A DNA stretch of 64,000 nucleotides from Ylistrum balloti (Eukaryota). The stretch lies in contig NW_026782241.1 of NCBI RefSeq assembly GCF_031769215.1, positions 124,001-188,000 of the forward strand. The letters run 5' to 3'. Below are positions 23,021 to 64,000 of this stretch, piece by piece. Position 1 is the first letter of the stretch; every line of letters starts with the position of its first letter. The position numbers and the translations under genes were made by a program. Below the pieces are notes generated by a model that saw only the letters and a program-made list of their open reading frames with translations, was not told the DNA's origin and did no database searches.

Positions 23021-24140
23021 CAGGATCAACCAAACCTGACTTAATCCCTTCTTCTTTTTTGTCTCCATCATTCTTCTATATCATCCAGACCACACCATTC
23101 TCAGACACCTGGTGTGACACCTTATCTTGGTCTGACCTCTCAACCACACCATTCTCAGACACCTGGTGTGGCACCATATCTTAGTCTGACCTCTCAACCA
23201 CACCATTCTCAGGCACCTGGTGTGGCACCATATCTTAGTCTGACCTCTCAACCACACCATTCTCAGGCACCTGGCGTGGCAACTTATCTTGGTCTAACCT
23301 CTTGTCCACACCATACTCTGACACCTGGCGTGGCAACTTATCTTGGTCTTTTCTGTGTAACCTCTCAACCAAACAATTCTCACACACTTGGCGTGGTGCC
23401 TTATCTTAGTTTAACCTCTCATCCACATCATTCTCACACACCTGGTGTGGCACCTTATCTTGGTCTAACCTCTTGTTCACATCATTCTCAGACACCTGCC
23501 ATTGCACCTTATCTTGGTCTAACCTCTTGTCCACACCATACTCAGACACCTGGCGTGGCAACTTTTCTTGGTCTTTTCTGTGTAACCTCTCAACCACACA
23601 ATTCTCACACACTTGGCGTGGTGCCTTATCTTTGTCTAACCTCTCGGTCACACCATTCTCAGACACCTGCCATTGCACCTTATCTTGGTCTAACCTCTTG
23701 TCCACATCATTCTCAGACACCTGCCATTGCACCTTATCTTGGTCTAACCTCTTGTCCACACCATTCTCAGACACCTGGCGTGGCAACTTATCTTGGTCTA
23801 ACCTCTTGTCCACACCATACTCAGACAACTGGCATGGAAACTTATCTTGGTCTTTTCTGTCTAACCTCTCTACCACACAATTCTCACAGGATCAACCAAA
23901 CCTAACTTAATCCCTTCTTCTTTTTTGTGTCTATCATCATATCACCCCGACCACACCATTCTCAGACACCTGGTGTGACACCTTATCTTAGTCTAACCTC
24001 TAGGTCACATCATTCTCACACACCTGCCATGGCACCTTATGTTGATCTAACCTCTCGTCCACTTGGTCTAACCTCTCAGCTACACCATTCTCAGACACAT
24101 GGTGTGGCACCTTATCTTGGTCTAACCTCTCAACCAAACA
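23021..24140. repeat. 54-bp tandem repeat (ACCACACCATTCTCAGACACCTGGTGTGGCACCTTATCTTGGTCTAACCTCTCA) with +9-bp variants and a duplicated leader at 23021 and 23887
   Basis: Direct reading. Confidence 0.9.
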
Positions 24141-28569: not shown

Positions 28570-28941
28570 TTAGTTTGGGAAAAGTGCCTCCCCATTAGGG
28601 CCAGGGATAAACACCCCAGCTTTTGTAGCTGTATATAATGACAGCACAGTCGCACCTAAGAAGATGACTGTCCCTGCAAGGGCTTTCAAGTATGACTTCC
28701 AAGTGGGACTGAAGTAACCAGGGGCAATGGTTGCCAGGAAGGCTGAGCAGACAGTTAGTGAATACACAATGGACACAGAGGTGTTGATGGCTACTATCTG
28801 GCCAAACTTGGAAAAAGGCTTGATGATCGTCTGGGTTAAGGGGACAGCAGCCACAATAGTGGTTAGTGCACTTGACAAGATGGACACCCCAATGTGTGTT
28901 ATAGCTGCCTTTGTTCTCCAGCGTCGGGCAGAGGAAGCAGA
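28570..28941 (-). CDS. DISP3: DISP3 coding exon 15 (last; TAA at 28572-28570)
   Basis: ttttctcatcag|TCT GCT; RRWRTKAAITHIGVSILSSALTT...PFSKFGQIVAINTSVSIVYSLTV...ALFPN*. Confidence 0.95.
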   Translation of the reverse strand, partial: SASSARRWRTKAAITHIGVSILSSALTTIVAAVPLTQTIIKPFSKFGQIVAINTSVSIVYSLTVCSAFLATIAPGYFSPTWKSYLKALAGTVIFLGATVLSLYTATKAGVFIPGPNGEALFPN

Positions 28942-29544
28942 CTGATGAGAAAAATGGAAAGAAGATGCTGTGTTATCACAATATGTTAAGTAGTGAATTA
29001 GAAGTAGTAAAGCAAAAAATATATATATTGTATCAAACAAGATCTCAGCAAACTCTGTGGCTGTTTTTTATTGTGGGACTTACTGGCTTAAGGTACAAGA
29101 GAACTTACAAAATGCACAAGTATCGCATACACTTCCTTGTTTTACAACATATACCAAGACCAGTATATGGTAGACTTAACAAACACAAATCACTTGAGCA
29201 GCTTTTCAGTAACCCGGTAACAGACAATAACCAAATTTACCTGCATCTGAAGTTCAAAATATTATGTAAAACTCAAAATGTACAATTTCCATTTTTTCCT
29301 TTCAAACATAAAAACAGTGATAAAATGTATTTCATTTAACCCTTACTGAAATACATATGTGCACCGCCCCTAATTTATGCAGAAATTCTAAAAACTTAGT
29401 TGTGAACTTGTACTACTGGCCCTTGGCAAAGCATTTCTTGTGCACATTCAGCCAGTCCAATCGTTTCAACTACAAACTTGAAAGGGATCTAGTATAAATA
29501 TGTAAATGACTAAATACAAATATATATAATATTAAACTTCTGAC

Positions 29545-30178: not shown

Positions 30179-30202
30179 TACTCATAAATCATTATGATAA
30201 GG

Positions 30203-31194
30203 GACATAATAGTAGCAAGTCTTGAAGCCTGTCTAAATGACATCAGTGCTTGGATGAACACAAATATGCTCAAGCTCAATCAGGAAAAGACAGAACTGAT
30301 CGTCTTTTCCCACAAGTGTCAACGCACTAAAGGTCTCCAGTTAAAGGTCAGTGCCCAAACTATTGAGGCCGTCCAAGCTGTGAGAAACCTTGGTGTACAC
30401 TTTGATAGCTCTCTGAACATGGAGAAACAGATAAACTCAATTGCCAGTTCCTGTTATCACCAAATCAGAAACATTGGGGGTATCCATCAGTTCATCACCA
30501 CAGATGCATGCAAGACATTGGTACATTCTCTTGTTACTTCTAGGTTAGACTATGGTAACGCGTTACTCGTTGGTGTATCTGATACACTAATGAGCCGTCT
30601 GCAGAGGGTACAGAACACCGCAGCACGCCTAGTTACCCGTACTCGAAAGAGGGACCACATTACACCAGTCCTTTACTTATTGCATTGGCTGCCCGTGTGA
30701 TTCCGGTCACAGTACAAGATTTTGATGTATACATACAAGGCAATAAATGGAACAGCTCCTGAATATTTGCAGGAACTTGTCACCGTTTATCGGCCGTCAC
30801 GATCATTACGATCGGAGACAGAATCCTTGTTGTGCGTTCCGAACTCTCGGACTGTGACTTATGGTAACCGATGCTTTGGAAAAGTAGCGGCCACTTTGTG
30901 GAACAGCTTACCATCTGCTACTAGAAAGTCAAAATCCCTGGCCAAATTCAAGAGGATATTAAAACCCACCTGTTTACGTCTGCATTTTAGACTCTCACGC
31001 AGACGTCCTGTATATACATACTTTCACCACTACTTACTTGATTTGGTTACTGTGTTACATATGTTGATTACTGTGTTATACATGTTCTGTAAATTTTGTA
31101 GTAAGATTATTATGTAATTGTGAAGCGCATTAGAGTATTTTGTCAAAATAGATAGTGCGCTATATAAATGTTGTATATTATTATTATTATTATT
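30203..31194 (+). mobile_element. 5'-truncated L2/CR1-group LINE (C-terminal RT region), antisense within the DISP3 intron between coding exons 13 and 14
   Basis: WM..NMLKLNQEKTELI, VRNLGVHFDSSL, LVTSRLDYGNALL, RLQRVQNTAARLV, HITPVL..LHWLPV. One in-frame TGA at 30698 and a 1-nt frameshift before (K)THLFTSAF*. (ATT)n tail. Candidate TSD ATAAGG at 30197-30202 and 31195-31200. Confidence 0.92.
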
Positions 31195-39215: not shown

Positions 39216-39894
39216 CTAACAAAAAGGAAAATTTTGATCATTTATAATGTCTCTCAACGAATTTTTACAGTGATATGTAAATACAGATTATTAATTGTAA
39301 ATGTATCTTACGTCCCTATCCAAAAATATGTATGTATAATGAATAACAGGTTGTTACATTAACTCTGCCTCAAAGTACCAAGACAAAGAAATAAGATAAA
39401 GAAATAAGATCTGTTGTTATTTCTATATGGAAAAAAAATTATACATGAGGGTGGGCTTATCAATAGACAGACTTATCACCTGACAAATGTAATTTTTAAA
39501 GATATGATAATAATTTTATAGATATATATGCATAGTCATATACATTGACATGATAAGATGTTTAATTGAGAACCATTGATTTCAGCTACCAACAACTGCA
39601 GTCTGTAAACAAATTCAATAGATTTACTGAAAAACTTTTATTTCTTGTAGGGTCATTATTTTTGTGGTTACCTTTTATCCACAAATTCATTAATCCACAA
39701 AAAAATAACTTCACATGTAATAGTAATATTGGCTTTGCAAGATTTATCAATGAAATCAAGTGTCAATAAAAATGCATATTTTGTAAAACAACAATAATGT
39801 GCTCTGTGAAAATTTGTGAAATTTATGTGTGTAAATGTATTAGTCATCTTAAGAGAGAGTCATCACAGCAAAACTATAAAATGAACATACTTAC

Positions 39895-41030
39895 TCATTT
39901 GATAACTTGGACAGAAGATCGATGTATGTCACCACAAATGCTTTGAATTTTTCTGATTGCTGCTTGATTTCAAAATATGGTGACCTATATCCCTGTAGAG
40001 GTGTTCCAAACTTCACTTCCGTCCTCAAAAAGCGACTCTTGTGAAAAGTTTTGTTAACATGGGGATCAACAAAGTAATAGGACTTATCTGATGTGAATGC
40101 CCATCGTAAGCCTTCACTGATGTTTCTAATAAGTGTCTCACCAAGACCGTCAAACAAAGGCCTGTTGTGATCATCCAACGAAGGGTAAAAGAAAGACATA
40201 AGAGAATTTAGCGGTGCGCATGAGTTCTGGGCGCGGACAGCAGGATCCATACGAGCTATAAAATAGTCTTTAAAACAGAAGTTGTAAAAATTTGGATGCT
40301 TTATGATCTTTTGTTCAATATCATGTATCATCTCCAGTCTTTCCTTTGTAAATATGTTGTCGTCCTCCTCACCTTTAGCCATAAAAACAACCTGCATCTT
40401 CCACTGTGCATGGTATTGATGCGCCATGATGCTAAATGAATCAGACGCTGAACGTTTTGATACACCAGGAATAAGATCATGGGTTCCATCTCTTGATGAT
40501 TTATGATTCCACAAAGGTTTGTTAGATTGTACCAAGTCACTTTCTCCACCATTGCTAAATGACCTGGGAGATCTCTTGTGCTTCTGGAAAAAAAGACTAC
40601 TACAGCTGTTAAAGTGAATGGAATGCTTGCTACTGTTTTGTTGTGCTGCACTTTGAAATGCATCATAGTTAATGGAGGCAGGATGGTTTGGGATTGTGAA
40701 GGCATGGATGGATTTGTCTATAACTGGCGTAGGCTGAAGTACAAACATACTGTAATAAAACAAGGCCGCACATACAGCTGGAGTTATAATCAACAGTCCT
40801 ACTGACACCAGCAATCCTATAACAGATGCTTCACGATTCTTTCCTACTTTCTTATTACAACAGCTGTCTTCACAAGATAGATTACATTTTAATTTCTGAA
40901 TACAGCTGAGTTGACCAGTTACAACAGTTGTCTCCCTTGGTACTGGTTCTGTGGAATCGTCACAATAGTCATCCAGTGGAAGCTGGTTGTACTGGACAGT
41001 GTCCCCACAGGATGTCAGCAGGCACGACAT
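39895..41030 (-). CDS. DISP3: DISP3 coding exon 1 (ATG at 41030; N-terminus, TM1, extracellular domain 1)
   Basis: MSCLLTSCG...HAQWKMQVVFMAKG...NIFTKERLEMIHDIEQKII...FVVTYIDLLSKLSN. Acceptor ttacag ends just upstream of 41043. Phase-2 donor GA|gtaagt after 39895. The start codon is inferred. Confidence 0.9.
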
Positions 41031-43234: not shown

Positions 43235-44625
43235 TATGGATGTATCATATATTTTAGTGTTGTGTATTACGTCATGTCAATTAAGTATGCATGTTTTGAC
43301 ACCTGACTGAAGACGAAAACTTAATCTATTGCGTGCCTTTAAATTTAAAATTGATCGTTCATCCCTCCAACAAATGTATTTTTCTTTCATCCGTCCAATC
43401 TTGGAATACGGAGACGTTATTTGGGACAATATGTCTATTGCCCAAGAACAAGTCATTGAAAACATCCAATTAGAAGCAGCACGCATTGTGACGGGTGCAA
43501 CCAAACTTACCAGCATTTTAAAACTTTACAATGAGACAGGATGGGATCCACTTAAAACTAGAAGAAACTATCATAAAATTATCCAGCTCCATAAAATGGT
43601 CCATAGCAAAACACCGCCATATTTACAAGATATACTTCCTCAGAGACACTCCAATATACACGGTCACAATACTAGAGAAGCCAATAACTTTCTTCCAATT
43701 CGCTGCAGAACAAATACATATAAAAAGTCCTTCTTACCTTCAACAATCCACCTTTGGAATGATCTCCCTGCTGCTATTAAAAATATTCCCTCTCTTTCAA
43801 AATTAAAATTGTATTTAAGTGCCAATGCTACTTCAGTGCCAACATATTATTTTGCTGGAACTAGACTTGGACAAATCTACCATGCTAGATTGCGTATGGA
43901 ATGTAGTTCCCTAAATGACCATTTATTTAAGAAAAAAATTGTTGAATCTCCGTTGTGTAGTTGTAGGTTATCAAATGAAACCGTCGAACATTATCCTTTA
44001 TATTGTACCAAATATAGTAACATTAGACAAGACTGTTTTGCTACTTTACCTTTACAAATAACCTTGGATACTTTAGTTTATGGAAACACTAACTTACCGA
44101 GAAATACCAACGAAATAGTATTTCAAAGTGTTCAAAATTACATTTTACGCACTAAAAGATTTGAATGATTGTTACATTATTTTTGTATGATAATTAAATA
44201 TTTATATACATATAGTATCAGTATCGGCGCGTCACCAGCTGGTTGAATATCCATCCGACATACGTCTACTTACTAACTCCTTTCCTTGATCTCCTACTCT
44301 CTCTACCCCTCTACTCTGAACTGATAACATGATTTCTCTTGTTTTTCGATATCCATATGACGTTATTTCTTTAAACATTAATAAATGCTTACAGTGCTGT
44401 TAAGTAGAATCACATCAAGGAGACAGATTTATATAAGTGTTCATCACTTGTTTCTGAATCCTTTTCTTTTGTATACCTAAGTACTCTGTAATATGTTATG
44501 TAATAAGAAAGAAATAAAGTTTAAACTAATGTACAGTGTACGTATATATGGATGTATCATATATTTTAGTGTTGTGTATTACGTCATGTCAATTAAGTAT
44601 GCATGTTTTGACACCTGACTGAAGA
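43235..44625 (+). repeat. Perfect 79-bp direct repeat (43235-43313 and 44547-44625) bracketing the CR1-like LINE
   Basis: Base-by-base comparison shows identity. Confidence 0.95.
43314..44526 (+). mobile_element. 5'-truncated CR1-like LINE (ORF2 C-terminus with Cys/His knuckle, plus 3' UTR)
   Basis: Open frame 43311-44168: FIRPILEYGDVIWDN, IENIQLEAARIVTGA, LYNETGWDPLKTRR, SFLPSTIHLWNDLP, HARLRMECSSLNDHLF, CSC..ETVEHY.LYC. Ends AATAAAGTTTAAAC. Confidence 0.92.
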
Positions 44626-48694: not shown

Positions 48695-50119
48695 TAAATG
48701 GTATAGAATAAATACAGCCCGATAGCATACACCCGGGAAATCAATTACGCCATTTACCATTTATTCCATGTTAATGCTATATGCCAATATCAAACATTTA
48801 AATGTCTTATAAAGCATTAATTGTAAATCTTATCTTATTTTCACGTTGTTCTAATATTATCTGATATATGAAAAGAACCCAATTTATTTAATTATGGGGC
48901 TTGTGCACCTTCCCGTCTTGATTTTTCACTTTTCTTTCGATCACCTTTGATTTTCATCAGTTGCCTCCTAGGCTTCTGAAGATAGGCCCTTATCATCACT
49001 GTGAAGTCCTAGAAGGACGAAACAGCTGTATAGTGCAGTTTGATTGTTTGACTCTATTGTATTTAATTCTAAATTTGTATTAAAAGATGTTATTCACTTG
49101 TGTGTCTTTTGTACAATCCTTAAATGTTTAAAATGAGTGACCCCTGTTTTTATAAAATTGTTTTTTGTTAAATGCCTTAGAATCAATTTGTTTACTGTTT
49201 TAGTGAAGATTCGACGTATTTACTAAGAAATTCCTACAGCAACAATAGACGACACTATTGCGGATTTATTTCAGGAAGTAGTATACACATGGTGAAGTCG
49301 GTCAGCTTGCTAAAACAATTTCTCCTGTAAAAATGAATTATGGTTAAGAAACATTCATAGCCCATACGATTTATCTAAATACACTGTATAGTAACCTATA
49401 AATAATGCACGTGACACTTATCGTCAACAGAGGTCAACTGTGTCCCGAGAGACTGCTTATAATCTATGTCTTGCCGGTAAACAAATACTATTCTGACATA
49501 TCATTTAACTCGCCTGGGCACCATTAGTTGACAGTACAAATCGCCAGCTTGACCTTTCATGTCCACCTCAGGACAGGTATGCAGCCTTACATGTATTCGG
49601 CCATGTCTGCTGTAATTGAGGGTGTACTCTTAATACAAAAGGTCCATGCAAGCATTGTGATGAATGACACACAGTCGGAAAATATGTAAACACGATTTAT
49701 CACAAATCATATAGTAGAACTGTTACGTACATGGGAGGGAACAGCCATGTTCTGCTGTTCTAGTGACACAGATTATCTAGGCAGCTTCACCTAATCTTGT
49801 CAGCAAAATACCACTCCCTCTTCGCTGTTCGTTGTTGCAAGTATCTTTGGAATAGAAAAGGATTATTGTGTCGACCATGAACATAACTTTTATGTTTGCA
49901 CGGTACTTGGAGCTCATCAGCTAATGAAATCGGATATGTCATGATTATGAATCTCAGCGAAGGATAACTAAAAGTTGATGCATCCTCTAACATATCGATA
50001 CATGTGATTGGTTCAATATTTTAAAAAAAATCAACATTTATACCGAAAAACAGTTCCGTGACAGAATTATGATTAATCTAGCGATAAAAAGATTTCCACA
50101 GTGTCACAGAAGAGTGGAA

Positions 50120-50610
50120 AAATCATACCGACAAAAAACTGCTTCTAAAACCAACACATCCCGACAAAAAACTGCTTCTAAAACCAACACACCCCGACAA
50201 AAAACTGCTTCTAAAACCAACACACCCCGACAAAAAACTGCTTCTTAAACCAACTCACCCCGGCAAAAAACTGCTTCTTAAACCAACTCACCCCGACAAA
50301 AAACTGCTTCTTAAACCACAACACACAAAAAAACAAACCCGGCAAAAAACTGCTTCAAACAGACAAAAAACTGCTTCTTAAACCAACACACCCCTACAAA
50401 AAACTGCTTCTTAAACCAACTCACCCCGACAAAAAACTGCTTCTAAAACCAACTCACCCCGACAAAAAACTGCTTCTTAAACCAACTCACCCCGACAAAA
50501 AACTGCTTCTTAAACCAACTCACCCCGACAAAAAACTGCTTCTAAAACCAACACACCCCGGCAAAAAACTGCTTCTTAAACCAACACACCCCGACAAAAA
50601 ACTGCTTCCC

Positions 50611-50641
<31 letters not shown>

Positions 50642-50910
50642 AATACTACTTCTTAAACAAATACACCCCGTGAAAACCTCGCATCTAAAACCAACATACC
50701 TCGGAAAAAACTGCTTCTGAAACCAACACACGCGTCAAAAACTCGCATCTAAAACCAACACAACCTGGTAAAAAAAAAAACGCATCTTAATTCAACACAA
50801 TTCAACTCACCCTGGTCAAAGAACGCATCTAAATCAACAATAAACTTACTCCGGTCAAAAAACGCATCTAAATCAACACACCCCGGCAAAATGTTGCATC
50901 TGAAACCAAC
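50120..50910. repeat. Minisatellite of about 33 bp (AAAAAACTGCTTCTWAAACCAACWCACCCCGAC), degenerating rightwards, with a poly-C/poly-A run near 50607-50642
   Basis: Direct reading. Confidence 0.92.
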
Positions 50911-52138
50911 ACATGTTAAATTTACAAGTCTTACTATACGTTATGATTCTTACATGATTTGGATTTTTTCGGATGAGATGACTGACCATGTGATCTGGTT
51001 TTACTTTGGCTTTGACAAGTGTTACGAGGTCTGTCTTGACATTTCTAGGTACATTTCACAATAATCAGAATTGTCCTTATTTGTTTATAGAACCTATAGT
51101 AAACGTGTTAAATACCGTAAGTAGTGCAACATGTAAGCTTGAAAGCTTCTGAGAATTTAAGTATAAGAAAGCTTATATAATAATACTTTGCAGATTGTGA
51201 TAGTCTGATGAATTTTATTTTGCCATATTTTTACAGGTAATTTCTTTTTATTTAAGAAAAAGTCAGTGTTGCTTAGCAATAAAACTTTGTGTAATTATGT
51301 TTTCAATACAGAGTATAATTTAAAATGGATAATAACAGGTATTTTATTCAACATTTACTATGCCACTTCTGACTTTTACTGGTAAAATAATTACATGGTG
51401 GGGTAGATGTATTTGATAATCGTGTGTGTGCCTGATTGTTCAATGGTTTTTTGATTGATGCTTGACAACACGGGTGTCGTTGATGAAGCAAAAGACGCTT
51501 ACTCTTCCTGAACACCTTTTTAGAACTTGGGCGTGTAAATCCTCCCTTTGTTAATACTTTTCCATAGATTAATTGAATTTGAGTTTCGATTATGATTCTG
51601 TTCGCATGTAGGCATTTTTCGTTAATATGTTTTTTTATCGTACTCAGCAGTTTGTGAAATTAAAATATATAGTCGATATGAAATTAAAAATTAACGTGCT
51701 GACGGAGATGGAAAACAAGAAAATACATACATTATAGAGAAATAGGAAAACATTCGTAGGAACGGTGACGGAAATTTTAAATTTTACATATTTTTTTATT
51801 TTTGCACAAATTCATACAATCACGCGTAAACCAAATTTCTTTATTAATATTTTTACATATTATTGTGTTTATTGTAACGCGATTTGGAAATAAAACGTTT
51901 TTGTTTGTTTTATAGCTTTTGTTTAAATATTTCAAAACAATAAAACTAAACCACTCTTGTTGTCGTGCCAGTATCAAACAGATCTTAACGGTTGTTCTCT
52001 AGACACATTTCTTGTCTCATATATTTATTTTTCTATTAATTATCTGTCAGACATTACGTTAAAACTACGTTCTCTTCCTCCAATGAAAAACAGGCAAGAT
52101 CCTTAGTTACCTGTTATGGAGTGATGTCCCTATGCAGG

Positions 52139-52146
52139 TATATAAG
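52139..52146 (+). promoter_or_regulatory. TATA box (TATATAAG) of the secreted-protein gene
   Basis: Begins 91 nt upstream of the ATG at 52230, implying a transcription start near 52170 and a 5' UTR of about 60 nt. Confidence 0.55.
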
Positions 52147-52229
52147 TTTCTGGTAAATGATGTACACTGCAGACCCACAGAAAACTTTCAATACAGAACA
52201 GGTATACAGTGTGTTGTTATAGAACCAAG

Positions 52230-52434
52230 ATGTACTCTTCTGTTATCACTGTGACCTGGCTCTGTTCTACCATTCTGTTCGGTGTCTGCCATGGATTTTT
52301 GTTTGGAGATTTGTTCGGAGCAGGAGGAGGCATGGGTGGGGGGATGGGAGGAGGAGGAATGGGAGGAATGGGAGGAGGAGGAATGTTTCAGATGATGGCT
52401 ATGGGAGGAGCTGACAATTATAATTCCATGATGG
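52230..52434 (+). CDS. Exon 1 of an uncharacterised secreted protein: signal peptide plus Gly/Met-rich tract
   Basis: aagATG start; MYSSVITVTWLCSTILFGVCHG|FLFGDLFGAGGGMGGGMGGGGMGGMGGGGMFQMMAMGGADNYNSMM; consensus phase-1 donor G|gtaagt at 52435. Confidence 0.85.
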
Positions 52435-53299
52435 GTAAGTCATGATTTTTTTGTTAATAAAGTTAAAAATGAAAACTTCAAATCAATATCTCTATATAAA
52501 CTAACATTTCCCCTATATATCAATAAGTGACTTTGACGTCATTTGTAATCTTTTTGTTCTCTTGCATGTATAAAGTTATTAATTATTAGCTTTGAGAATG
52601 CAATGTAACCTTCGTAAATATCTCTAGAGGACACAAAAATAACAGTAAAATAGAAAACATTCGTCTAATATCATTACAATGTTCAATGTCTTAAGCGACA
52701 AGGAAGATCAAAAAATAAAAATGAAAAAAAAAAAAAAAAAATCAAAAAATAAATTTGAGAAATAATTAAGACGATTATCAGGAAGCGATCGCTGAGATAA
52801 ACGATGAAATACTACCTAGGTCATTATTTGTAGAACTTGAGACATCAAACACTCGTGGTTGTTTGTATCACTTAGTGGTGTAACTTGTCGACGATATGTA
52901 ACCTTCAACAAATTATCAGGATTATACAAAAGAACAAGGAAATAACTGGTTTCAATGCATATTTAGAATTAACTGCAGTAGAGTCAAATAATGAATACAG
53001 CTCTGAGAAGGGAGAAATACTGAAAAAAATCTACATACATGTGTGGAGATGTACCGATACCATAAAAAGTGCTATTTTACAGGTTATGATAGTAGGAAAA
53101 AGACGATGAATATGTTATATCACAATTAAACAATGATAAAACAATTTTAAAAAATGCACCTAGTACGGTAGGAAATGCACAAGCTTACGGAATATTGTTG
53201 TTGTCAGTACTATCAACACGATCCCGATTGTTAATTTCACATTAAAATCAATTTATCTAGAATAATTGTAATGAGGAAGTTTCTGCTCTTAAAAGTGAG

Positions 53300-53875
53300 C
53301 TGGTCTCCAATCCTTACAGAAAGCTAGTTTGTAATCTGTGCTATCAGTTATTCTCTAATAATCCTTAGAGCAGGTTAATCTCTAATCCTTACAGTAACCT
53401 AGTCTGTATTCCGTACTGTCCGCTAATCTCTGATCCTTACAGTAGGTTAATCTCTGATCCTTACAGTAAGTTTATCTCTAATTCTTACAGTAAGTTTATC
53501 TCTAATCCTTACAGTAAGTTTATCTCTGATCCTTACAGTAAGTTTATCTCTAATTCCTACAGTAAGTTTATCTCTAATCCTTACAGTAAGTTAATCTCTA
53601 ACCCGTACAGTAAGTTAATCTCTAACCCGTGCAGTAGGTTAATCTCTAACCCGTACAGTAAGTTAATCTCTAACCCGTACAGTAGGTTAATCTCTTATCC
53701 TTACAGTAAGTTAATCTGTAATCCGTACTGTCAGCTAATCTGTGATCTTTAGAGTAGGTTAGTCTCTAACCCGTATAGCAAGTTAATCTCTTATCCTTAC
53801 AGCAAGCAAGTCTGTAATCAGTACTGTCAGCTAATCTCTGATCCTTAGAGTAGGTTAATCTCTTATCCTTACACA
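53300..53875. repeat. 25-bp tandem repeat (TCTCTAATCCTTACAGTAAGTTAA-like) in the intron of the secreted-protein gene
   Basis: Direct reading. Confidence 0.88.
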
Positions 53876-55179
53876 CTAGGTACATAGACACCGTATCCCT
53901 CCTCTCTAAAACACATTAAAATGACCTTACACAGCAGGGACATAACTTCCTATCTGTCCCTGCAAACACCTGATTATGACCAAATTCTTAATATTCATTC
54001 AATGCACTTTAAATCTTTAAATTCATAAAGAGATATGATACCACAGTGTTGCTACGTTTATCTGATATTTCAACCACGGAAAACTAAAATGTTTTATCAG
54101 TCTCGATTGAAATGGAAACTAGTGTAAAAACCTAAAAATAGTCCTCTACCTAAAACATCTGTTGTTCAAAAAGAAATTTAAGGATATTCGTTGAATGTCT
54201 GAGATAGGGTCAGGAATCTGCATCTAAGTATGAAACACATATACCTTAGAACTCGAAAATAAAACGCGACTTTTCTTTAATAGTAAGCAAATATTTTATC
54301 TATGTAAGAAACTATTGTTTTAGAGGTAATTTGTTTATGGATTTTTGAGATATCTCAAAACAAAATAATGAAATAAAGAAATATTTAAAAACAACGCGTT
54401 CCGTTCTCATATCGATATTAGTAGTTTAACAGGCTTGTCGGAGCCGGAACATCTGAACATCTGACGAGGACGAAAAGCAGCCTATCCACAATCGTATCCA
54501 GCTTCTTTGACAATTTGATTTTATTAATAATTTTTGACATATGTTGGATGTTTATATAAAGTAGTCAGATTATGTGACGTGTTATACTTATCATGTCGGG
54601 AGTGCCAAGTTATCTATTATTTTTGTTAAGCACTATACTTTGTCTTTGTCTGCAAAACATGTCACGAGAATATTAATGTTTTTATACTTTGTACTATTAT
54701 GCGCTAACTGTTTGTATGATATAAATGTAACGTTTACGAGGTGTTGACAACCATTAACTTGTATAATTAAGTAATTAATGCGTATTAAACAGAGTCATCA
54801 CGTTAGCCTTGTTTTAACACCTTAACCCTTGACCATAAATTCTCCAGGACGTGCTTACGAGATGAACAGTTTGTGACTTTTCAGAACTAGATTAAAGATG
54901 TTTTTAAAATTGTTTGCACAATCTTCAATGGGACTCCGTGTGAATGTTTCTTTTGATGGACTTTTTCATCATTTTAATAATTTTGAGTTTATATTAAAAT
55001 TTTGTTCACACATTGCCATGGTAATCTCATCAACTTCAGTCAACAAAATGTAATTCATGATAATGTATCTTTACCTTTTTAGGATTGCATAACCTTTTAT
55101 ATACAACAAGTTATCATTACCACATCAATACAGTCTTGTGTTTGTTAATACACTGTAGTATAATTATCATTACTATTGA

Positions 55180-55740
55180 GCTCCCTGCTGTAGCCAGTTG
55201 CCTCTTTGTCTTAGAAACTCACTGTTGTAGCCAGTAACTTCTTTGTCTTAGAAAATCTGTCGTGGCCAGTAAATTCTTTATCTAGAAACTCTTCCTGTCG
55301 CAGCCAGTAGCCTCTTTGTCTTAGAAACTTTCCCTGTCGTAGCCAGTAGCCTCTTTGTCTTAGAAACTTTCCCTGTCGTAGCCAGTAGCTTCTTTGTCTT
55401 TGAAACTCTCCCTGTCGTAGCCAGTAGCTTCTTTGTCTTTGAAACTCTCCCTGTCGTAGCCAGTAGCTTCTTTGTCTTAGAAACTTTCCCTGTCGTAGCC
55501 AGTAGCTTCTTTGTCTTTGAAACTCTCCCTGTCGTAGCCAGTAGCTTCTTTGTCTTAGAAACTTTCCCTGTCGTAGCCAGTAGCTTTTTGTCTTTGAAAC
55601 TCTCCCTGTCGTAGCCAGTAGCCCCGTTGTCTATAAACTTTCCCTGTCGCAGCAAGTAACCTCTTTGTCTAGAAACCCCGTTTCGTAGCCAGTTGCCTCT
55701 TTGTCTGGAAACTCCTTGTCGTAGCCAGTAACCTCGTTGT
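55180..55740. repeat. 39-bp tandem repeat (CTTTGTCTTAGAAACTTTCCCTGTCGTAGCCAGTAGCYT), about 14 copies
   Basis: Direct reading. Confidence 0.92.
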
Positions 55741-58700
55741 CACAGACGTGGTTGTTAAATGTCATAATAACAGATTGGTTAAAGGGTACAAACGCTTACT
55801 GATTGCATAAAAACAGCACCAGGAGCTAAATGTTATTCTTTAACACCGAGACTCGTGTAGGGTTCTCGACGACACTGCAGTGTTTTTGTCAAAGCATGCT
55901 TTATGCTGTAATTTAGCTATTGGGTATTGATACTGTGTTCCATGCTCATGCTTTGATATAGCATTTGCGATTTGATACTGTGATAAATGTTTGTTTTTGT
56001 TTTGTGTTTGAAACACCTGGCTTACGTAAATGACTGGTTATCGTCTTTTGTGCAAAATCGTGTAGGTAGCGTAGATAACAGACAATATAAGCTGAAAACG
56101 GAATGTTTACTTCCCTCTGACAATAGTCTCAAACCGAGACTGTTTCGAATAAGCTGTATATTTAAGTCAGAATGCCTATTTTATTATTTCACATTATTTC
56201 ACTTATGCAAGGTATAAGAGAAATATAGTGGCAGAATATCTTACAATGTTTTAAAGTAAATAATTTTAACACTGATTTTAGCATGGACTCAATGCTGTAT
56301 CGAACGCTACATGAAACACGAGAAAAGATTAAAATGAAACATTTCTTTCATACTTGGTACATTTTTGTACTCAACTACGTCGTATCATATTTTTACGGTC
56401 TGGTGCATTAAGCCCAAGCAAAGTGCCGTCTAGACAACAGGTGCCCCAATGTTAAGGTCCATGTCAGTAACGTCCCTCCTTTAAAGGATATCATCATGAT
56501 TCTGACCTTTTTATATGCATTTTTGACATTTTTTAAGCAAGTCAAGTAACAAATAAATATTCCCTCGGATATCAACATTGAAAGTTATACTTTTTAAAGG
56601 GGAAGTAAAATGATGGAAATGATATTTTCAAGGAAATTCGTAGGAAAATGGATATGTTTTTTTCGATATTTCCAATACACTTTTTCCAAAATACTTTATG
56701 TTGCGGCCATCACTTAAAAATTCATTGGCATTAGCAGGCTTTCGTAAGTTTGAAAGGATTAGGATAAATTTACACATGGAATTTTTCCAACGCAGAGGAT
56801 CAGTTTATGTTTCTGATAACTTTAATGGAATTTTGCTTATGGCTTATAGGTCAAAAGTATGATACTGAACTGAATTATGACATATGCCCCAGTGAAAAGA
56901 GTTATCTTTGATTTTCGTAATGATATCACTGATGTCCCTCAACACAAGCGCTTCCGTAATGGACTAAGTTGCAAGTTAATAGTATATTACAGTTACTAGA
57001 TATGGAGAAAGTCTTTTGTCATTGAAAATTCATTTGCGATAACGATGGCGTTAAAACCAGATAAATATAAACAAACAATAAAATACGTCAAATTTTTAGT
57101 CTGAACTGCTTTTCTGCGGTTATTTCTTAGCTTCTATTCCTATCTGTAACCGTTTCTTATTCTTTATTAATCTTAACTCTTCACACTTGGCTTTCGGTAT
57201 GATCTGCTTCTCTGGGTTCTTTCTTAAATTCTACTCCTATCTGTAACCGTTCCTTAATCTTTATTAATCTTTGGCTTTCGGTATGTAGGACACGGATTCA
57301 AATGGAAATGGAAAATCATAACATGATATGTTCTACTTCGCATGAAAACAATACAAAAGCTAACGTTCAAATTTATGAGTGTTAAAAAAACAAGAAAATA
57401 CGAACATGTCAAAATAATCATTACCCATACTCAATGTAAATATAACTAGGGCAGCATCAATCTTTAAGTCAACCAACTTTGAAACTTAGGGGGCGACAGA
57501 GGGAAACGAATTAGCTATTCCCATGTCTGTTTGATTCTACTCTGGGTTTCTAGTAGTGCATTACAGAAATATTATATTTTTAGATTGTGCATTTTATGGG
57601 ACACGACATTTGACTTATCTGACGGGTTTTGCTTGATAAACTATGTCCAGAAATTCTTCTCCTGACAAGATTAATGACTTAACGTATGTTTGAAGACTTA
57701 TATGTTCACACGTTGACTTAAAATGACTGGTTAGTTTGTAAAAGAGAACTGTTTTATTGTTCAAAATAAAGCGACGTCTCTGGCATTACATAATTTAACT
57801 CAACAAAGGACATGTACATTTTGTTTTCTGTTGATATGAAGTTCACTAAATGAAATGATTTAGTTAGTAAAGTGTACAATTCTGGAGAAAATTTAATTGA
57901 TTAATTGATGCTCTAGGATAGAACAGTATGAACAGGACACAAACTAATCACAATATCACAATATACCACACAATATGCAGATGATGAAATAACACCGTAA
58001 ACCACACACAGTACACTAGTAATTATATAACACATTGTACCACACACAGCACACTGGGGATGAGATAACACTATGTACTATCGGTGGTTCGTTTAGAGTC
58101 CCTGCTGACTTATTTTATGACTGATTGTCGCTTGACCGATGACATGAGGTTTTGTGGTCAGTTTAGATGAAACCCATATTTCCTATCCGCCAAGCAGTTG
58201 TCAGATGAATAACAGTGTCGACTTTTGATGTTATGGTCATGCTCATATGACCACAGTACCTTATTGTGGAGGTCAAGCTGAGGTAATGGCAGTGTCCAGT
58301 ATCCTTGATACTCTGATACCAAACACTACGGACATTGTCCGAGAAATTGTGTTTCTATAGTCCACATGATGTTATAAATACAGTAATTTTAAAAATTGTG
58401 AAAAATGAAGTTTTGTATAGAGTAATGTAGGCTACAGGTTATGAAGTGATAACAACACTCTTCTACAGTTTAGAGTCTATTTTCATTTATGAAATGAAAA
58501 TATTTTTGCAGGTCTATCACATACCTTAGGTCATTAGGTGATAAATAAATTTGTTAAATGTACTGTAAACTTCGGTATTTGAGATTATTTATGTTTTGTT
58601 TTGTAAACATATCACAAATTTAATGTACATATTGTACATTTTCTATTTTCATGTTACTAAACTCCTTTGTTGAATAGAAACGGATATCATGTCGTAAAAA

Positions 58701-60814
58701 CAAAAAAATATTTGCTAGGCTTTCTCCATTAGTTGATTTTGATTCAGAGGTAACCTTGTTGTCCTTTGATGTGAAAACTAACAATTTATAATCATGATGA
58801 CAGTACTTAGAAATCTATTCTTCTCTGCACCAGGTAGCTACACAACGCTTTTGTTTTAATAAATCATAGCTTTTGTCAACCTTGTACATACGACATGATG
58901 TACTGCTACGCTGCTAAAGAAAGGGTGCGGATTTCAAGAGGTAGCCATAGGGATATTGGCCTGAATCGTCATGTTTTATCATTAGTTTCATTATGAGTAT
59001 ATACAAATAAATGATTAAAGGCATTTGATAAAAGCAAAGTAAATAAAAAATGAAAAATGTAATATTTTAAAAGTTAATTTAAAAAAAAATATTTTAATTT
59101 CATATTTTTTTCGGCTTACCTTCCTGCTGTTGTTTATAGCGTTGACTAGGCATAAAGATAACAGTCCATTAATTCCAACCTATGATGCTGTGTCGGAATG
59201 AATGATTTATTAAGATGACCACACATTGCTTGACCTATAAGGAGGGGTGTGAGCGAAGTTATCAGTAAACGGCGTTTGTCCACTGAAACATTCAGAATCT
59301 TCACTAACGATGTCATCTTTCGGACTGATTTCATTCTGTATTGTACTGATATTGGCATCACCATGTCTCGGATTTTTCGATTTCTTTGACATGTACGATG
59401 GTTTCCAAGGTAGGTCAATGCTTTAGTTGAAATTATACTGATTCATGGACATATATGACGGTGACAGGATCAAGGCAAATTCAACGAATCTACGTTTGTG
59501 TTTCATATTGAATTATCTATCTTAAGGTATTCATAACACATGAATGCCAACTGAAAACACTTTAATACATATATTGACCGTTTTCAATTTTCATTTTATC
59601 GTAAAGGAAGACAACTTCAGTTTGCTTATATTACTTACAAAATTCAGACACTGTTGGCAGTTCATGAGCTGGTAATACACAACTGACTTTGGTAAGGTTT
59701 CATCGTCCATCTGAGCAATGCAATACAATTGTAAAAGGATCCTTTACCTGATTAAGACTTTTTAAAGTCCGTAATACCACTTGATGGCAAGGATTTTATT
59801 AGATGTTTTCCAGAAGTCTATTTTTACCGTTCACAAACATCGTGTTTTTATTGTGTATTATATTATGTTGCATTTGTTTTATATCAAATAACTAAAAAGT
59901 CAATTATATCTCTTAAAAGAAAGGTAATGTGTCAATAAAGAAAAAGATCATTTTTGAGGTATCTCTATATTGTGTGTAAATCTACATAATGAAGTGACAT
60001 ATGATATCAATACAATAATGAGAATTTTTATTCTTGCTTCTATTTCTTAATTTAACAGTTTGTTTTCGAGACGACTCAGGTCGCGAAGTGATATGTAAAC
60101 ATCCATGCAGTGTTAGGTTTGTTACCGAATATTAGATTTATAAACAGAATTTTACATCACGAATTTTCCATGTTTTAAAATATTATGATGTTTATCAGTT
60201 TAAGTATTCGTGAAGCCTATAACTTGTATCTAAAAATGATATTAATGGTAAAGAAATAACAATCAGAAAAACAAAGACAACTTTAATCGACTAAATGGGT
60301 TTTAAAAAATAAATATTCAATTTACATTCATACAGGAAACAAAGAGGTTAATAATTCGAAAATATATGGGTAACAACTAACAAAAATAAAAATAGAAGAA
60401 TTATTTATCAGACAATGTTATAAAAGGAGTGAAAAACAAGGGAGATAATAAACAAAGGGTGTGATAATAAGGTTACGATAGAAGGGGAGGACTAAGGTAG
60501 AAAAAATGATATGTTAACGTGAGTGATAATTACAATACAAATGATAAACAGTTGATGTGATATAGGGGTGATAATAACAAGGGAGATAAAAAGGGGCTAT
60601 AATATCAGGGATGATATTGGCAACGAGAGATAATCATAAAAATATTATAGACGTGGAATTAATTGACAAAATCAGAGATAAGATGCGATTGAATATGACA
60701 TTATTATTTTTTGTATTGATATTGGTTACATGTATATCATGATAACAGTCGTGTTTTTTTATCGTATAAACATATCGGTTATCGGGTGGCGCAATAGTAA
60801 TACAATGTAATGTC

Positions 60815-61315
60815 ACTAGTTTCTACGAAAGATAATGTAACATCACCTCATTCTACGTAAAATAATGTAACATCATCTTATTCTATGTAAGATAATATAA
60901 TATCACCGTTTTCTATGTAAGGTATTGTAATATCACCATTTTCTGCGTAACATATTGTAATATCACCATTTTCTATGTAAGGTATTGTAATATCACCAGT
61001 TTCTATGTAGGGTATTGTAATATCACCAGTTCCTACGTAAAATATTGTAATATCACCATGTTCTATGTAAGGTATTGTAATATCACCATTTTCTATGTAA
61101 GGTATTGTAATATCACCATTTTCTGCGTAACATATTATAATATCACCAGTTTCTACGTAAAATAATGTAATACCATCATTTTCTACATAAGATATTGTAA
61201 CATCACTAGTTTCTACGTAAGGTACTGTAATATCACCAGTTCCTACGTAAAATAATGTAATACTATAATTTTCTACGTAAGATAATGTAACATCACAAGA
61301 GTCTACATAAGATAA
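60815..61315. repeat. 30-bp tandem repeat (TTGTAATATCACCATTTTCTATGTAAGGTA), about 16 copies
   Basis: Direct reading. Confidence 0.9.
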
Positions 61316-63256
61316 GTGAAATTACAAATTATTAGGTTATAACATTAGTTTAACTGTTCCGCTATCAGTCTTGGTAAGCAAATAAATAATTCACCACAGA
61401 AAGTGACCATGAATCACTCGTGAAATTATGACATTAATATATTTCTTATGTCGAGCGATATAATGTCGGCCATTAGAACCTAAAACGAACATAGGTGATG
61501 GACATCAGAGGTGTGTGAATTAGGAAAGACAGTTGTTCCCATCTCAGATGTTAACCGTTGATATGTCTTCATCTGGATTTTGACATTTTATTTTCTCCAG
61601 TTGCCCCGCAAGTTTCAACAATTCAGGTACTAAGCATAAAAGAAGAGTACTAGAAAAATAAAATAACTGAGTGATAAAGTTTTATCAATTATCTGGCTTT
61701 ACTAAATCCAATTTTAAATTTGAATCGGGTTATTATTGTGTGTCGTTTGTAAAATTTGATCAAATATGTATGTTTCTGAATACAAATTTAAGTGCATAGT
61801 ATATGGTTTTATGTCGTCAGGTGAAAAAATATTCTTTAATGTTAATGTCATAGTAATAACGTTGTTAGAAATCCAGATGTTATATACGTTTGTATGTAAA
61901 AACGTGGTAATATAAATCACTAGCTAAAAATATAGCCTGGAATGTTATGGCTACGGTAATATGAGTCGTTAGTGACCGGACGAGACATATTCTTAAATGT
62001 TTTAGTTGTGGTTATATACGTATACTTAAACATTGTTATAACCCTAAATCATTTGTTCTTTTTGGTATGTACTCTGTCAGCAACTGAAAAAAAAAACTTC
62101 ATAATAGAAAAAATATACCGAATTTAGTTTGTGTGTTGTTCTGATGATTATGTTTATAAAGGCTGTTCACGCAACCTTTATTTAATAGGTATTATAAATA
62201 TGTAAACAATATGTATGAACGAGGGCGTATGTGAGTATTATAAACATTAGCTGATATACCAGTGGGAACATTTGATAAGATATTGACTTTTTCTCCCTGT
62301 TTTTCATTGTTTTCATATCCATAGGCTAAATGGTTTTATTTTAATTTCTGCAGATTAAAGTTTTTATGCATTTAATGAACTTTTTATGAATTTACATTAA
62401 TGCTTATGCTGTCTGTTTGATTCTAATGGCAAAATATTTTTGAACAAAATTTAAAGATTGTAAAAACGACACACATGGGAATAACACTTTTTCATAATTA
62501 AGTGTCAGATACGGTAAAGCCAAACAATGAATTAACCTGCATTATACAGCTGTCGTTCCAGAACTCGTCAGGGATGCCTAAACTTTGAAGCCTAGTAGGC
62601 GACGAATCCAAAATGATTAAACGAAAAGTAAAAATATAGACAGGGAGGTGCAGCAGTCCTATAGTTAGAAGTTAAAAAAGTTGAGGTCGGTGTTATGAAC
62701 ACATTTAGTGACAAGGTATAATCAGAACACTGTTATCCTATCATACTTAATGACGTTTCTAACATTTCATGTATACAATAAACACGACAATGGATAAGAA
62801 ATGTGTAATAATGATAATAAAAATACATGTCGTGGGTGATAGACAAATGTGAAATCATACATTACAACAAGTCCATATTGGGGTAACAACGCATTGTTTG
62901 AAAAAGAACAAGAAACGGTACAGTATGCATTTGATGGCTATAAAGACGGCTGTGTCAATGTCTTATACATTGTGATTGATTTTGTTTTGTTTTGTTTTTT
63001 TTTCATTGATTTTTGGTAGGAGCCACGTCTGGGATCAATAATGTCCCGAATTCAGTATTCATTCCATATGAGACACTGGCATAGCCTTCGCTCAAGTCTT
63101 CAAAGACACCGCGTATCGTTAGTGGTACTTTTCAAACATTGTGAAGTCACTCCAAACTCTTGACTAAGCAAAAGAGGAGATGATTATATAAACATATTTC
63201 CATATATTGTTTTGGTACTCACAACTTACCATATTTGTCTATTTGTGTGATTACAG

Positions 63257-63612
63257 AGCAGAGATATGGTTGCCAAACAGACGGAGGTTATTGTTTAGAT
63301 ATGTACCCACCTCCAGCATCACAAGGAGGTGCTGGAGGAGAGCCACCGGAAGTCGAAATGGAAGGAGGAGCACCAACTGCTCAACCTCATCAGCCAGCTG
63401 GAGGCCATGGAGGCCATGGAGCCCCTGGAGCCCACGGGAGAGGAAAAACCCCAGGCAGACCTGGCGCGAACCCTCCCCCGGCCACACCAGCACCTCCACG
63501 AAGGATGGTTGCTCACCCGATGCATTACATCCGTCAGAACTGTAGGAGTTTTGATTTTGACTACTTCAGTTGCGGTAGAACAGGGGGCGTGTGTTGTTAC
63601 CAGAGGCCATAG
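63257..63612 (+). CDS. Exon 2 of the secreted protein: six-Cys beta-defensin-like spacing split by a Gly/Pro/His-rich loop
   Basis: gattacag|AG CAG AGA completes G+AG=Glu in phase with exon 1. GC-rich island in AT-rich DNA. CQTDGGYC-x82-CRSFDFDYFSCGRTGGVCCYQRP*. The link to exon 1 across a 10.8-kb intron is inferred from phase and from the lack of another partner exon. Confidence 0.8.
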
Positions 63613-64000
63613 TCATCGTTCATACCTCAGGTACATGTATCGTCTTATTTAGTGTCGTGGAAATTGCTAATTGCTGTATGCATTTAGATATATGTTTACA
63701 TTTGTGTAATACTAACAAAATCAGGTCATTTCCAAGACGAAATTTGTTTATGCTCCTTGTATGAATGATTAATGATTGTAAAACCTTATCACAGATTCTG
63801 TTTTATTACACGTAATTCGTAAGTTAGTTTCGATTTGCATAAATGTTATGGTAAGAGCGTTGCTAACAACACTATGATAAAAAGTGATGTTTATTCCACA
63901 TTTATTTATTATTGATACAGCCGTTTAGCCTCAATAGAGTATATCATCATCATTGTGTTGTTAGGAAATATTCTGCTTCTATGATATGAAATTAGAGGTA

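Follow-up and report, generated by a model that had tools for sequence, protein, structure and literature searches.

A 64,000-nucleotide stretch of the genome of the scallop Ylistrum balloti (contig NW_026782241.1, positions 124,001 to 188,000 of the forward strand; hereafter the window, in whose own numbering all coordinates are given) contains a gene for a small six-cysteine protein with a predicted signal peptide. On balance, and with modest confidence, we favour the view that this is a genuine single-copy gene of an undescribed family, that it has two first exons, and that its products carry a split beta-defensin-like unit which serves as a conserved extracellular binding or signalling module.

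Gene structure and the two first exons

The 186-residue Y. balloti protein is encoded by two exons, 1a and 2 (Table 1), bounded by GT/AG splice sites and sharing a codon split in phase 1. The first-pass annotation of this DNA, made from the letters alone, had proposed such a two-exon open reading frame (ORF) with a signal peptide and six cysteines, all of which is borne out by the splice sites, by the translation and by the RefSeq protein XP_060073717.1. Positions 52230-52433 translate into 68 amino acids, which comprise a signal peptide of 22 residues (MYSSVITVTWLCSTILFGVCHG, MYSS...VCHG, 52230-52295), the segment FLFGDLFG, a Gly/Met tract of GGGM type (residues 30-60, 52317-52409) and ADNYNSMM. 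The last base of the exon, G at 52434, is followed by the donor GTAAGT; the acceptor AG of exon 2 (63255-63256) stands behind a pyrimidine-rich stretch, and the split codon G/AG across the junction specifies Glu69. From 63259 the frame runs for 117 amino acids, from QRYGCQTDGGYC to NCRSFDFDYFSCGRTGGVCCYQRP, and ends in CCYQRP before the stop codon TAG (63610-63612). The cysteines occupy residues 74, 81, 164, 174, 181 and 182, and the 82-residue loop that separates Cys2 from Cys3 contains the HGGHG motif and the proline-rich stretch that had been described for it.

Table 1. Position and content of the gene's exons, upstream blocks and protein parts
Feature	Position	Strand	Content and basis
Conserved region upstream of exon 1a, candidate promoter and 5′ leader	52028..52229	+	blastn island shared with A. 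irradians
Exon 1a, coding part	52230..52434	+	signal peptide, FLFGDLFG, Gly/Met tract, ADNYNSMM; ends in phase 1; donor GT at 52435
Conserved block upstream of exon 1b, candidate second promoter	59205..59248	+	blastn island shared with A. irradians
Alternative first exon 1b	59310..59409	+	own signal peptide MSSFGLISFCIVLILASPCLG, then FFDFFDMYDGFQ; ends in phase 1; donor GT at 59410
Exon 2	63257..63612	+	whole six-cysteine framework and stop codon; splice site, translation, conservation
N-terminal cysteine half, QRYGCQTDGGYCLDMYP	63259..63309	+	Cys74 at 63271-63273, Cys81 at 63292-63294
82-residue Cys2-Cys3 loop	63295..63540	+	predicted disordered; acidic, then His/Gly, then Pro-rich basic
C-terminal cysteine half, CRSFDFDYFSCGRTGGVCCYQRP	63541..63609	+	Cys164, 174, 181 and 182; preceded by the predicted helix PMHYIRQN

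The same junction is already present in RefSeq. Residues 25-210 of XP_060073717.1 (Y. balloti, 210 residues) are the 186-residue protein letter for letter, residues 25-92 being identical to the product of exon 1a, and its cysteines at 98, 105, 188, 198, 205 and 206 correspond, after subtraction of 24, to those given above. The joined form was used here only as this database protein, residues 25-210. The RefSeq model has a 24-residue 5′ extension and is flagged LOW QUALITY because base 52202 was skipped, fusing a short upstream ORF to the gene; the junction is not concerned. In Argopecten irradians, XP_069122828.1 (isoform X1, 177 residues) has exactly the architecture of the 186-residue protein, so that two species have RefSeq models of the exon 1a/exon 2 junction, which is further backed by the conserved phase. 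A sequencing run mapped on 58100-64000 proved to consist of genomic contigs of another individual, continuous through the introns, and is uninformative on splicing; exact-protein look-ups of the scallop and oyster proteins returned genome records only and no transcripts. The gene is single copy in Y. balloti, since each of three queries against the genome (exon 2, exon 1a and a C-terminal cysteine-half profile) matches this locus alone. No paralogue was found there, the next-best match of the C-half profile having an E-value of 0.118 and lying outside any open frame.

A second first exon, 1b, lies inside the 10.8-kb intron and had been overlooked in the earlier annotation. It was found by tblastn with A. 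irradians isoform X2 (XP_069122837.1, 144 residues), a protein retrieved by a word search with exon 2, of which XP_069122828.1 is the cluster mate; X2 starts with a signal peptide of the 1b type, different from that of X1. Exon 1b is followed by a GTAGGT donor and, joined to exon 2, predicts an isoform of 151 residues that lacks the Gly/Met tract. At the A. irradians locus the exons follow in the order 1a-1b-2 with unchanged phases, and the first exons of oysters resemble exon 1b, an oyster leader being GFFDFFGEYRDIM. BLASTP finds no alignment between exons 1a and 1b; by eye, a C-x-G/F-[LF]-F junction is common to the two leaders (the slash marking cleavage). By sequence logic, with the cleavage motif C-x-G/F present in both leaders, the protein is predicted to be secreted, and its mature N-terminus would differ with the first exon used, being a hydrophobic Gly/Met tail with 1a and a short aromatic-acidic tail with 1b.

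Within the gene, blastn aligns Y. balloti with A. irradians at just three places, namely 52028-52440 (exon 1a and 200 bp upstream of it), 59205-59248 and 63251-63608 (exon 2); a fourth island lies upstream of the gene at 49477-49564. The region upstream of exon 1a holds a TATA box, TATATAAG (52139-52146), identical in the two species in the alignment, together with a CCAAT-like motif and a ATTACGTTAAAA motif, while the block upstream of exon 1b holds a TATA-like element, CTATAAGG (59235-59242), which is also conserved in A. irradians. From these features we infer a promoter role for both blocks. Between 52050 and 52100, upstream of the first TATA box, ATTACGTTAAAA(C/A)TACGT and the CCAAT-like CTCCAATGA are nearly identical in A. 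irradians and are candidate regulatory sites. An upstream ORF at 52157-52222 (21 codons, beginning ATGATG and closed by a stop at 52220-52222) leaves 7 nt between itself and the main ATG; the position of the TATA box (52139-52146) places the probable start of transcription downstream of the ATGs of this upstream ORF.

The ratio of nonsynonymous to synonymous substitution rates (dN/dS) between Y. balloti and A. irradians comes to 0.116 in exon 1a (65 codons), 0.171 in exon 1b and 0.111 in exon 2. In the last of these the loop has a ratio of 0.20, the N half one of 0.03 and the C half one of 0.02; all these ratios are rough because dS exceeds 1. As judged from this comparison, all coding exons are under purifying selection. 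The values for exons 1a, 1b and 2 imply that all three behave as coding sequence and that the Gly/Met exon is no accident. Exon 2 is 68% identical to that of A. irradians by BLASTP and 78% identical by pairwise alignment. In a second Y. balloti individual an in-frame 9-bp insertion, TGGAGGCCA, behind position 63398 lengthens the GGH repeat of the loop; the length of the loop is therefore polymorphic within the species, with the frame kept. Two further differences in this individual are G>A at 63397 and, without effect on the protein, a synonymous G>A at 63603.

These comparisons bear on the suspicion that two ORF pieces from different transcripts, or non-coding pieces, have been joined by mistake. 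An intron of 10.8 kb and a RefSeq model flagged LOW QUALITY might encourage it, and the junction is drawn from gene models and a conserved phase. However, a second genus of scallops retains the exon order, the phase and the coding sequence, at a dN/dS near 0.1, the two-exon plan is also found in oysters, and the flag touches only the 5′ extension at base 52202. We regard such an artefact as highly improbable.

A family in scallops and oysters

An exhaustive HMMER search and a profile word search recovered a family whose members had hmmsearch E-values of 4e-68 to 5e-4 and, in a second search, of 2.6e-44 to 2.4e-16. In addition to the scallop proteins it includes Saccostrea cucullata XP_062581161.1 ("SR splicing factor 1-like"), S. 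echinata LOC133196534, Crassostrea virginica LOC111138375, Ostrea edulis LOC130050890, an oyster-like Logan contig and four ENA proteins. The 12 proteins from scallops, oysters and ENA/Logan assemblies all keep the arrangement C-x6-C, a loop of 56-88 residues and C-x8/9-C-x6-CC-Y. Ten alignment columns are invariant in 12 of 12: the six cysteines, the Gly two residues before Cys2 (the Gly preceding it being nearly invariant), two positions in an aromatic-acidic strand (Asp and Phe), and the closing Tyr. The invariant residues of the C half are C, D, F, C, C, C and Y, and the aromatic-acidic alternation is conserved as FDFDYF, WDYDF or FFDFFD. Both scallops and two oysters have a phase-1 intron placed five codons ahead of Cys1, and in two further taxa the acceptor sites fit this position. 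The ENA members are on contigs of ERZ23487774, ERZ25069870 and ERZ25069866, which are filed as metagenome or unnamed assemblies and evidently hold animal (bivalve-like) DNA; in these assemblies a prokaryote-style gene caller had taken exon 2 as a stand-alone ORF.

That the protein might already be annotated had been foreseen, and it is indeed in RefSeq, but in the form of automatic models with spurious names, and a described family was not found. XP_060073717.1 is called 'ESX-1 secretion-associated protein EspB-like', XP_069122828.1 'zinc finger X-linked protein ZXDB-like' and XP_062581161.1 'serine/arginine-rich splicing factor 1-like'. These three names have no Pfam domain behind them and look like low-complexity artefacts of the Gly/Ala/Pro/Arg loop. 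The accession numbers of the family members had no match in searchable papers. This appears, then, to be an undescribed family of small secreted proteins, annotated only under misleading automatic names.

The tail of exon 1a had been called abductin-like. There is a likeness to abductin in that both are secreted scallop proteins, rich in Gly and Met, with motifs of GGM type. Abductin, however, is built nearly entirely from some dozen decapeptide repeats rich in Gly, Met and Phe and lacks a cysteine domain, whereas here a single tract of about 30 residues sits in an alternative first exon and the remainder is the loop and the six-cysteine domain. The likeness appears to be one of composition only: the tract is a 24-bp unit repeated 2.5 times, has no significant match in its own genome, and was seen just in the two scallops and in none of the four full-length oyster proteins. 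Against the genome exon 1a matches itself only, the next-best match (E 0.16) being to a junk ORF, although low-complexity matches of this kind are hard to score. The protein is not abductin, and the Gly/Met tract is probably not an abductin domain.

The first-pass annotation had suggested a chimeric structural/immune protein or a matrix protein of shell or ligament. A protein of the shell, the ligament or another extracellular matrix could nevertheless be built in this way, with the Gly/Met tail and the loop as low-complexity matrix segments and the cysteine unit as a knob for cross-linking or anchorage. Regions of low complexity rich in Met occur commonly among the insoluble proteins of shell and ligament in Pinctada fucata (PMC7591529), and such a role would suit the repeat-like tract and loop, the G/A/R/P-rich composition and polymorphic length of the loop, and the conserved aromatic-acidic alternation. 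It fits poorly with a tract of about 30 residues that is absent from all four full-length oyster proteins though the remainder is conserved, with the lack of a significant match to exon 1a elsewhere in the genome, and with the absence of the family's accession numbers from searchable papers. On this evidence a matrix protein seems unlikely.

Charge is distributed unevenly along the protein. The loop begins with the acidic stretch EPPEVEMEGG, passes through the His/Gly stretch GGHGGHG and closes with a Pro-rich basic stretch ending in PPRR, and the acid-then-basic polarity is found in nine of ten proteins analysed. Net charge ranges from -3 to +2 in the N half and from -2 to +2 in the C half, and the isoelectric point (pI) of the mature scallop and oyster proteins from 5.2 to 7.8; of these parts just the second half of the loop is basic, the cysteine core being neutral to acidic.

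The basic cluster that most members have before the C half may hint at a two-chain secreted hormone or prohormone of insulin-like logic, a signalling ligand in which the loop would be a connecting peptide, a proprotein convertase would cut before the C half to leave an N-chain and a C-chain of roughly 35 residues, and disulfides would link the halves. The cluster reads PPRR/M in Y. balloti, PPRR/V, PARR/V, RRPR/V and RQRPR/V in oysters and RRRR/Q in an ENA member (the slash marking the putative cut), and single copy, strongly constrained halves and a non-cationic core suit a ligand better than an antimicrobial peptide. But A. irradians has PPRQ and no dibasic site, O. edulis has RRPQ directly before the C half with RQRR two residues earlier, and the border between N half and loop has no basic site, so that the loop could not be excised; an amidation signal is lacking as well. 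The small size, secretion and C-terminal ...CCY of the family recall the lophotrochozoan CLCCY neuropeptide precursor (PMC3890597, PMC8398477), but the family ends G-[VI]-C-C-Y, without the extra cysteine of C-L-C-C-Y, and one Cragi-CLCCY peptide (supplement of PMC8398477), compared by eye and without alignment, bears no visible resemblance; the idea of a CLCCY neuropeptide was set aside. A cleaved hormone is in our opinion improbable.

The cysteine framework compared with that of defensins

AlphaFold2, run on the 186-residue protein with the 12-sequence alignment, gave predicted local distance difference test (pLDDT) values of 74-77 for residues 70-89 and of 84-88 for residues 150-180; values for the Gly/Met tract and the loop (loop residues 90-133) were below 50. 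The modelled elements are, in order, a strand (80-82, which includes Cys81, pLDDT about 75), a helix (156-163) and two more strands (166-169, 180-183), and a second model, of the mature O. edulis protein, has its elements in the same order. These models of a helix and three strands suggest a beta-defensin-like knot, and their best match in the PDB is 7t9q_A (crocodile CpoBD13). Other structural searches were less informative: Foldseek against the PDB with the first model returned nothing, a wider PDB structure search with that model was swamped by the signal-peptide helix, one PDB structure search with the second model gave no matches, and PDB sequence searches found nothing. In the ESM Atlas a shape search reached a template modelling (TM) score of at most 0.35 and a feature search had no usable match. 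A predicted complex of the N half with the C half scored 0.01, a figure obtained without alignments or controls that counts neither way.

With vertebrate beta-defensins the protein shares small size, predicted secretion and a Gly-Gly-x before Cys2, which may resemble that of human beta-defensin 1; its models, with a helix and three strands, may also correspond to the beta-defensin fold of one helix and a three-stranded antiparallel sheet. Set against the beta-defensin spacing C-x(4-8)-C-x(3-5)-C-x(9-13)-C-x(4-7)-CC, the interval of 6 between C1 and C2, that of 6 between C4 and C5 and the final CC fit; the C3-C4 interval, 9 in scallops and 8 in oysters, is borderline, but the C2-C3 interval is 56-88 in 12 of 12 members, not 3-5. 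The cysteine core differs from mature beta-defensins also in charge, since these are cationic. In Pfam the window protein has no match at E-values up to 10, PF00711, PF13841 and PF14862 included; among 11 members one reached E 5.1 with Defensin_beta_2 (PF13841), and the C halves alone have no Pfam match. In vertebrate beta-defensins a phase-1 intron separates the signal-peptide exon from a single cysteine exon. Big defensins and a non-canonical clam big defensin likewise have a phase-1 intron before the cysteine exon (PMC7203481). The present gene follows the big-defensin plan, with a phase-1 intron directly upstream of one exon that holds all six cysteines, although the intron carries low weight because such introns are common among secreted proteins. 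The beta-defensin-like framework proposed in the first-pass annotation therefore survives in part. Four of the five cysteine intervals, Gly-Gly-x-Cys2, the gene plan and, tentatively, the model agree with it; since the Cys2-Cys3 interval, the charge and the hidden Markov models (HMMs) disagree, we do not file the family as a member of the beta-defensins.

Big defensins (PF14862), which occur in horseshoe crab and amphioxus and, like this gene, in bivalves, and which share with it an N-terminal part on one exon, a phase-1 intron and six cysteines on the last exon, invite a closer comparison. The hydrophobic N-terminus of isoform 1a is loosely analogous to the N-terminal domain of big defensins, but is low-complexity rather than globular. 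The spacing of big defensins is C-x6-C-x3-C-x13/14-C-x4-CC, with no long insertion. They are cationic, whereas the present family is neutral to acidic in its core, single copy and conserved. Big defensins of oysters and mussels have undergone lineage-specific duplication, rapid diversification and presence/absence variation, and scallops have a single big defensin gene (PMC7203481). Together with their non-canonical relatives in Ruditapes and Dreissena (PMC7203481), which we group with them, the big defensins are among the closest known systems, as are the vertebrate beta-defensins. In the Y. balloti genome PF14862 gave one match of 20.7 bits, on a junk ORF.

A classical host-defence peptide, either a non-canonical big defensin or a beta-defensin-like peptide in which the Gly/Met tail replaces the hydrophobic big defensin domain, would account for the cysteine spacing, Gly-Gly-x-Cys2, the phase-1 intron and the top structural match, all of which are defensin-like, as well as for the hydrophobic 1a tail and the basic second half of the loop. 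It would not be expected, however, to have a neutral to acidic core with the pI values given above, to be single copy under strong purifying selection, in contrast with the big defensins of oysters and mussels (PMC7203481), or to lack any match to Defensin_big or Defensin_beta HMMs. We consider this explanation quite unlikely. As to ancestry, we advance tentatively, as possible rather than probable, that the family is an undescribed branch of the trans-defensins (big defensins and beta-defensins) whose three-disulfide fold was interrupted between Cys2 and Cys3 by a disordered, acid-then-basic loop of 56-88 residues, which lost its cationic character and was kept as a single copy, under strong purifying selection, in scallops and oysters, and to which a promoter and a first exon for an elastomer-like Gly/Met tail were added in the two scallops examined. 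On this scenario the loss of cationic character would imply a role as a non-microbicidal ligand or surface binder.

The reading that we favour, a split beta-defensin-like unit acting as a binding or signalling module, can be put together as follows. Exons 1a and 1b, each with a TATA-type block upstream and a signal peptide of its own, would both be splice-compatible in phase 1 with the six-cysteine exon. After removal of the signal peptide, the C-x6-C half and the C-x9-C-x6-CC half would pack into one unit of a helix and a three-stranded sheet. Three disulfides would hold this unit, and a pairing of C1-C5, C2-C4 and C3-C6 would tie the halves together and close the 82-residue, acid-then-basic disordered stretch into a displayed loop; the variable N-terminal tail and the charged loop might then adjust how the protein associates with itself or attaches to a surface or matrix. 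A binding or signalling module is favoured over a membrane-killing cationic peptide because of the neutral-acidic core, the single copy and the strong purifying selection. Several points weigh on the other side: that both first exons are used is deduced from RefSeq models and from conservation, defensin HMMs give at best E 5.1 in one of 11 members, and the C2-C3 interval of 56-88 lies outside the beta-defensin range.

Genomic surroundings and implications

The window contains many minisatellite arrays. Their units, as far as measured, are 24-39 bp long, and they occupy 274-2487, 12920-14714, 23114-23910, 50128-50880, 53359-53873, 55181-55741 and 60806-61314; three of them lie inside the 10.8-kb intron, and the arrays create long spurious ORFs. 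Runs of N at about 9030-10000 fall inside a GC-rich, strongly skewed repeat region (4000-10100). Two long open frames on the minus strand, 39891-41030 (379 residues) and 28570-29040 (156 residues, hydrophobic), have no Pfam match at E <= 0.01 and may be exons of a neighbouring gene. The plus-strand ORFs 30194-31117 and 43329-44168, which have no Pfam match at E <= 0.01 either, look by eye like the tail of a non-LTR (long terminal repeat) retroelement ORF2, a likeness that is unconfirmed. Next to the orthologue, on its downstream side, A. irradians has a gene for a pyridoxal-dependent decarboxylase (PF00282; 16358-17941 of the A. irradians locus L006, minus strand); the matching stretch of Y. 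balloti lies beyond the end of the window.

Whatever its fold turns out to be, this gene offers a clear case in which a pair of candidate TATA promoters would exchange both the signal peptide and the mature N-terminus of a single secreted domain, and the RefSeq names "EspB-like", "ZXDB-like" and "SR splicing factor 1-like" should not be propagated. Defensin-type folds are believed to leave little room for variation between the cysteines. If the split unit is real, a natural disordered insertion of 56-88 residues would show that a three-disulfide scaffold can be closed around a long loop, which would be of interest to protein engineers and to studies of how invertebrate big defensins and beta-defensins have diversified. 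It would also extend a superfamily whose reputation is chiefly for rapidly evolving antimicrobial peptides by a member that is non-cationic, single-copy and slow to evolve.

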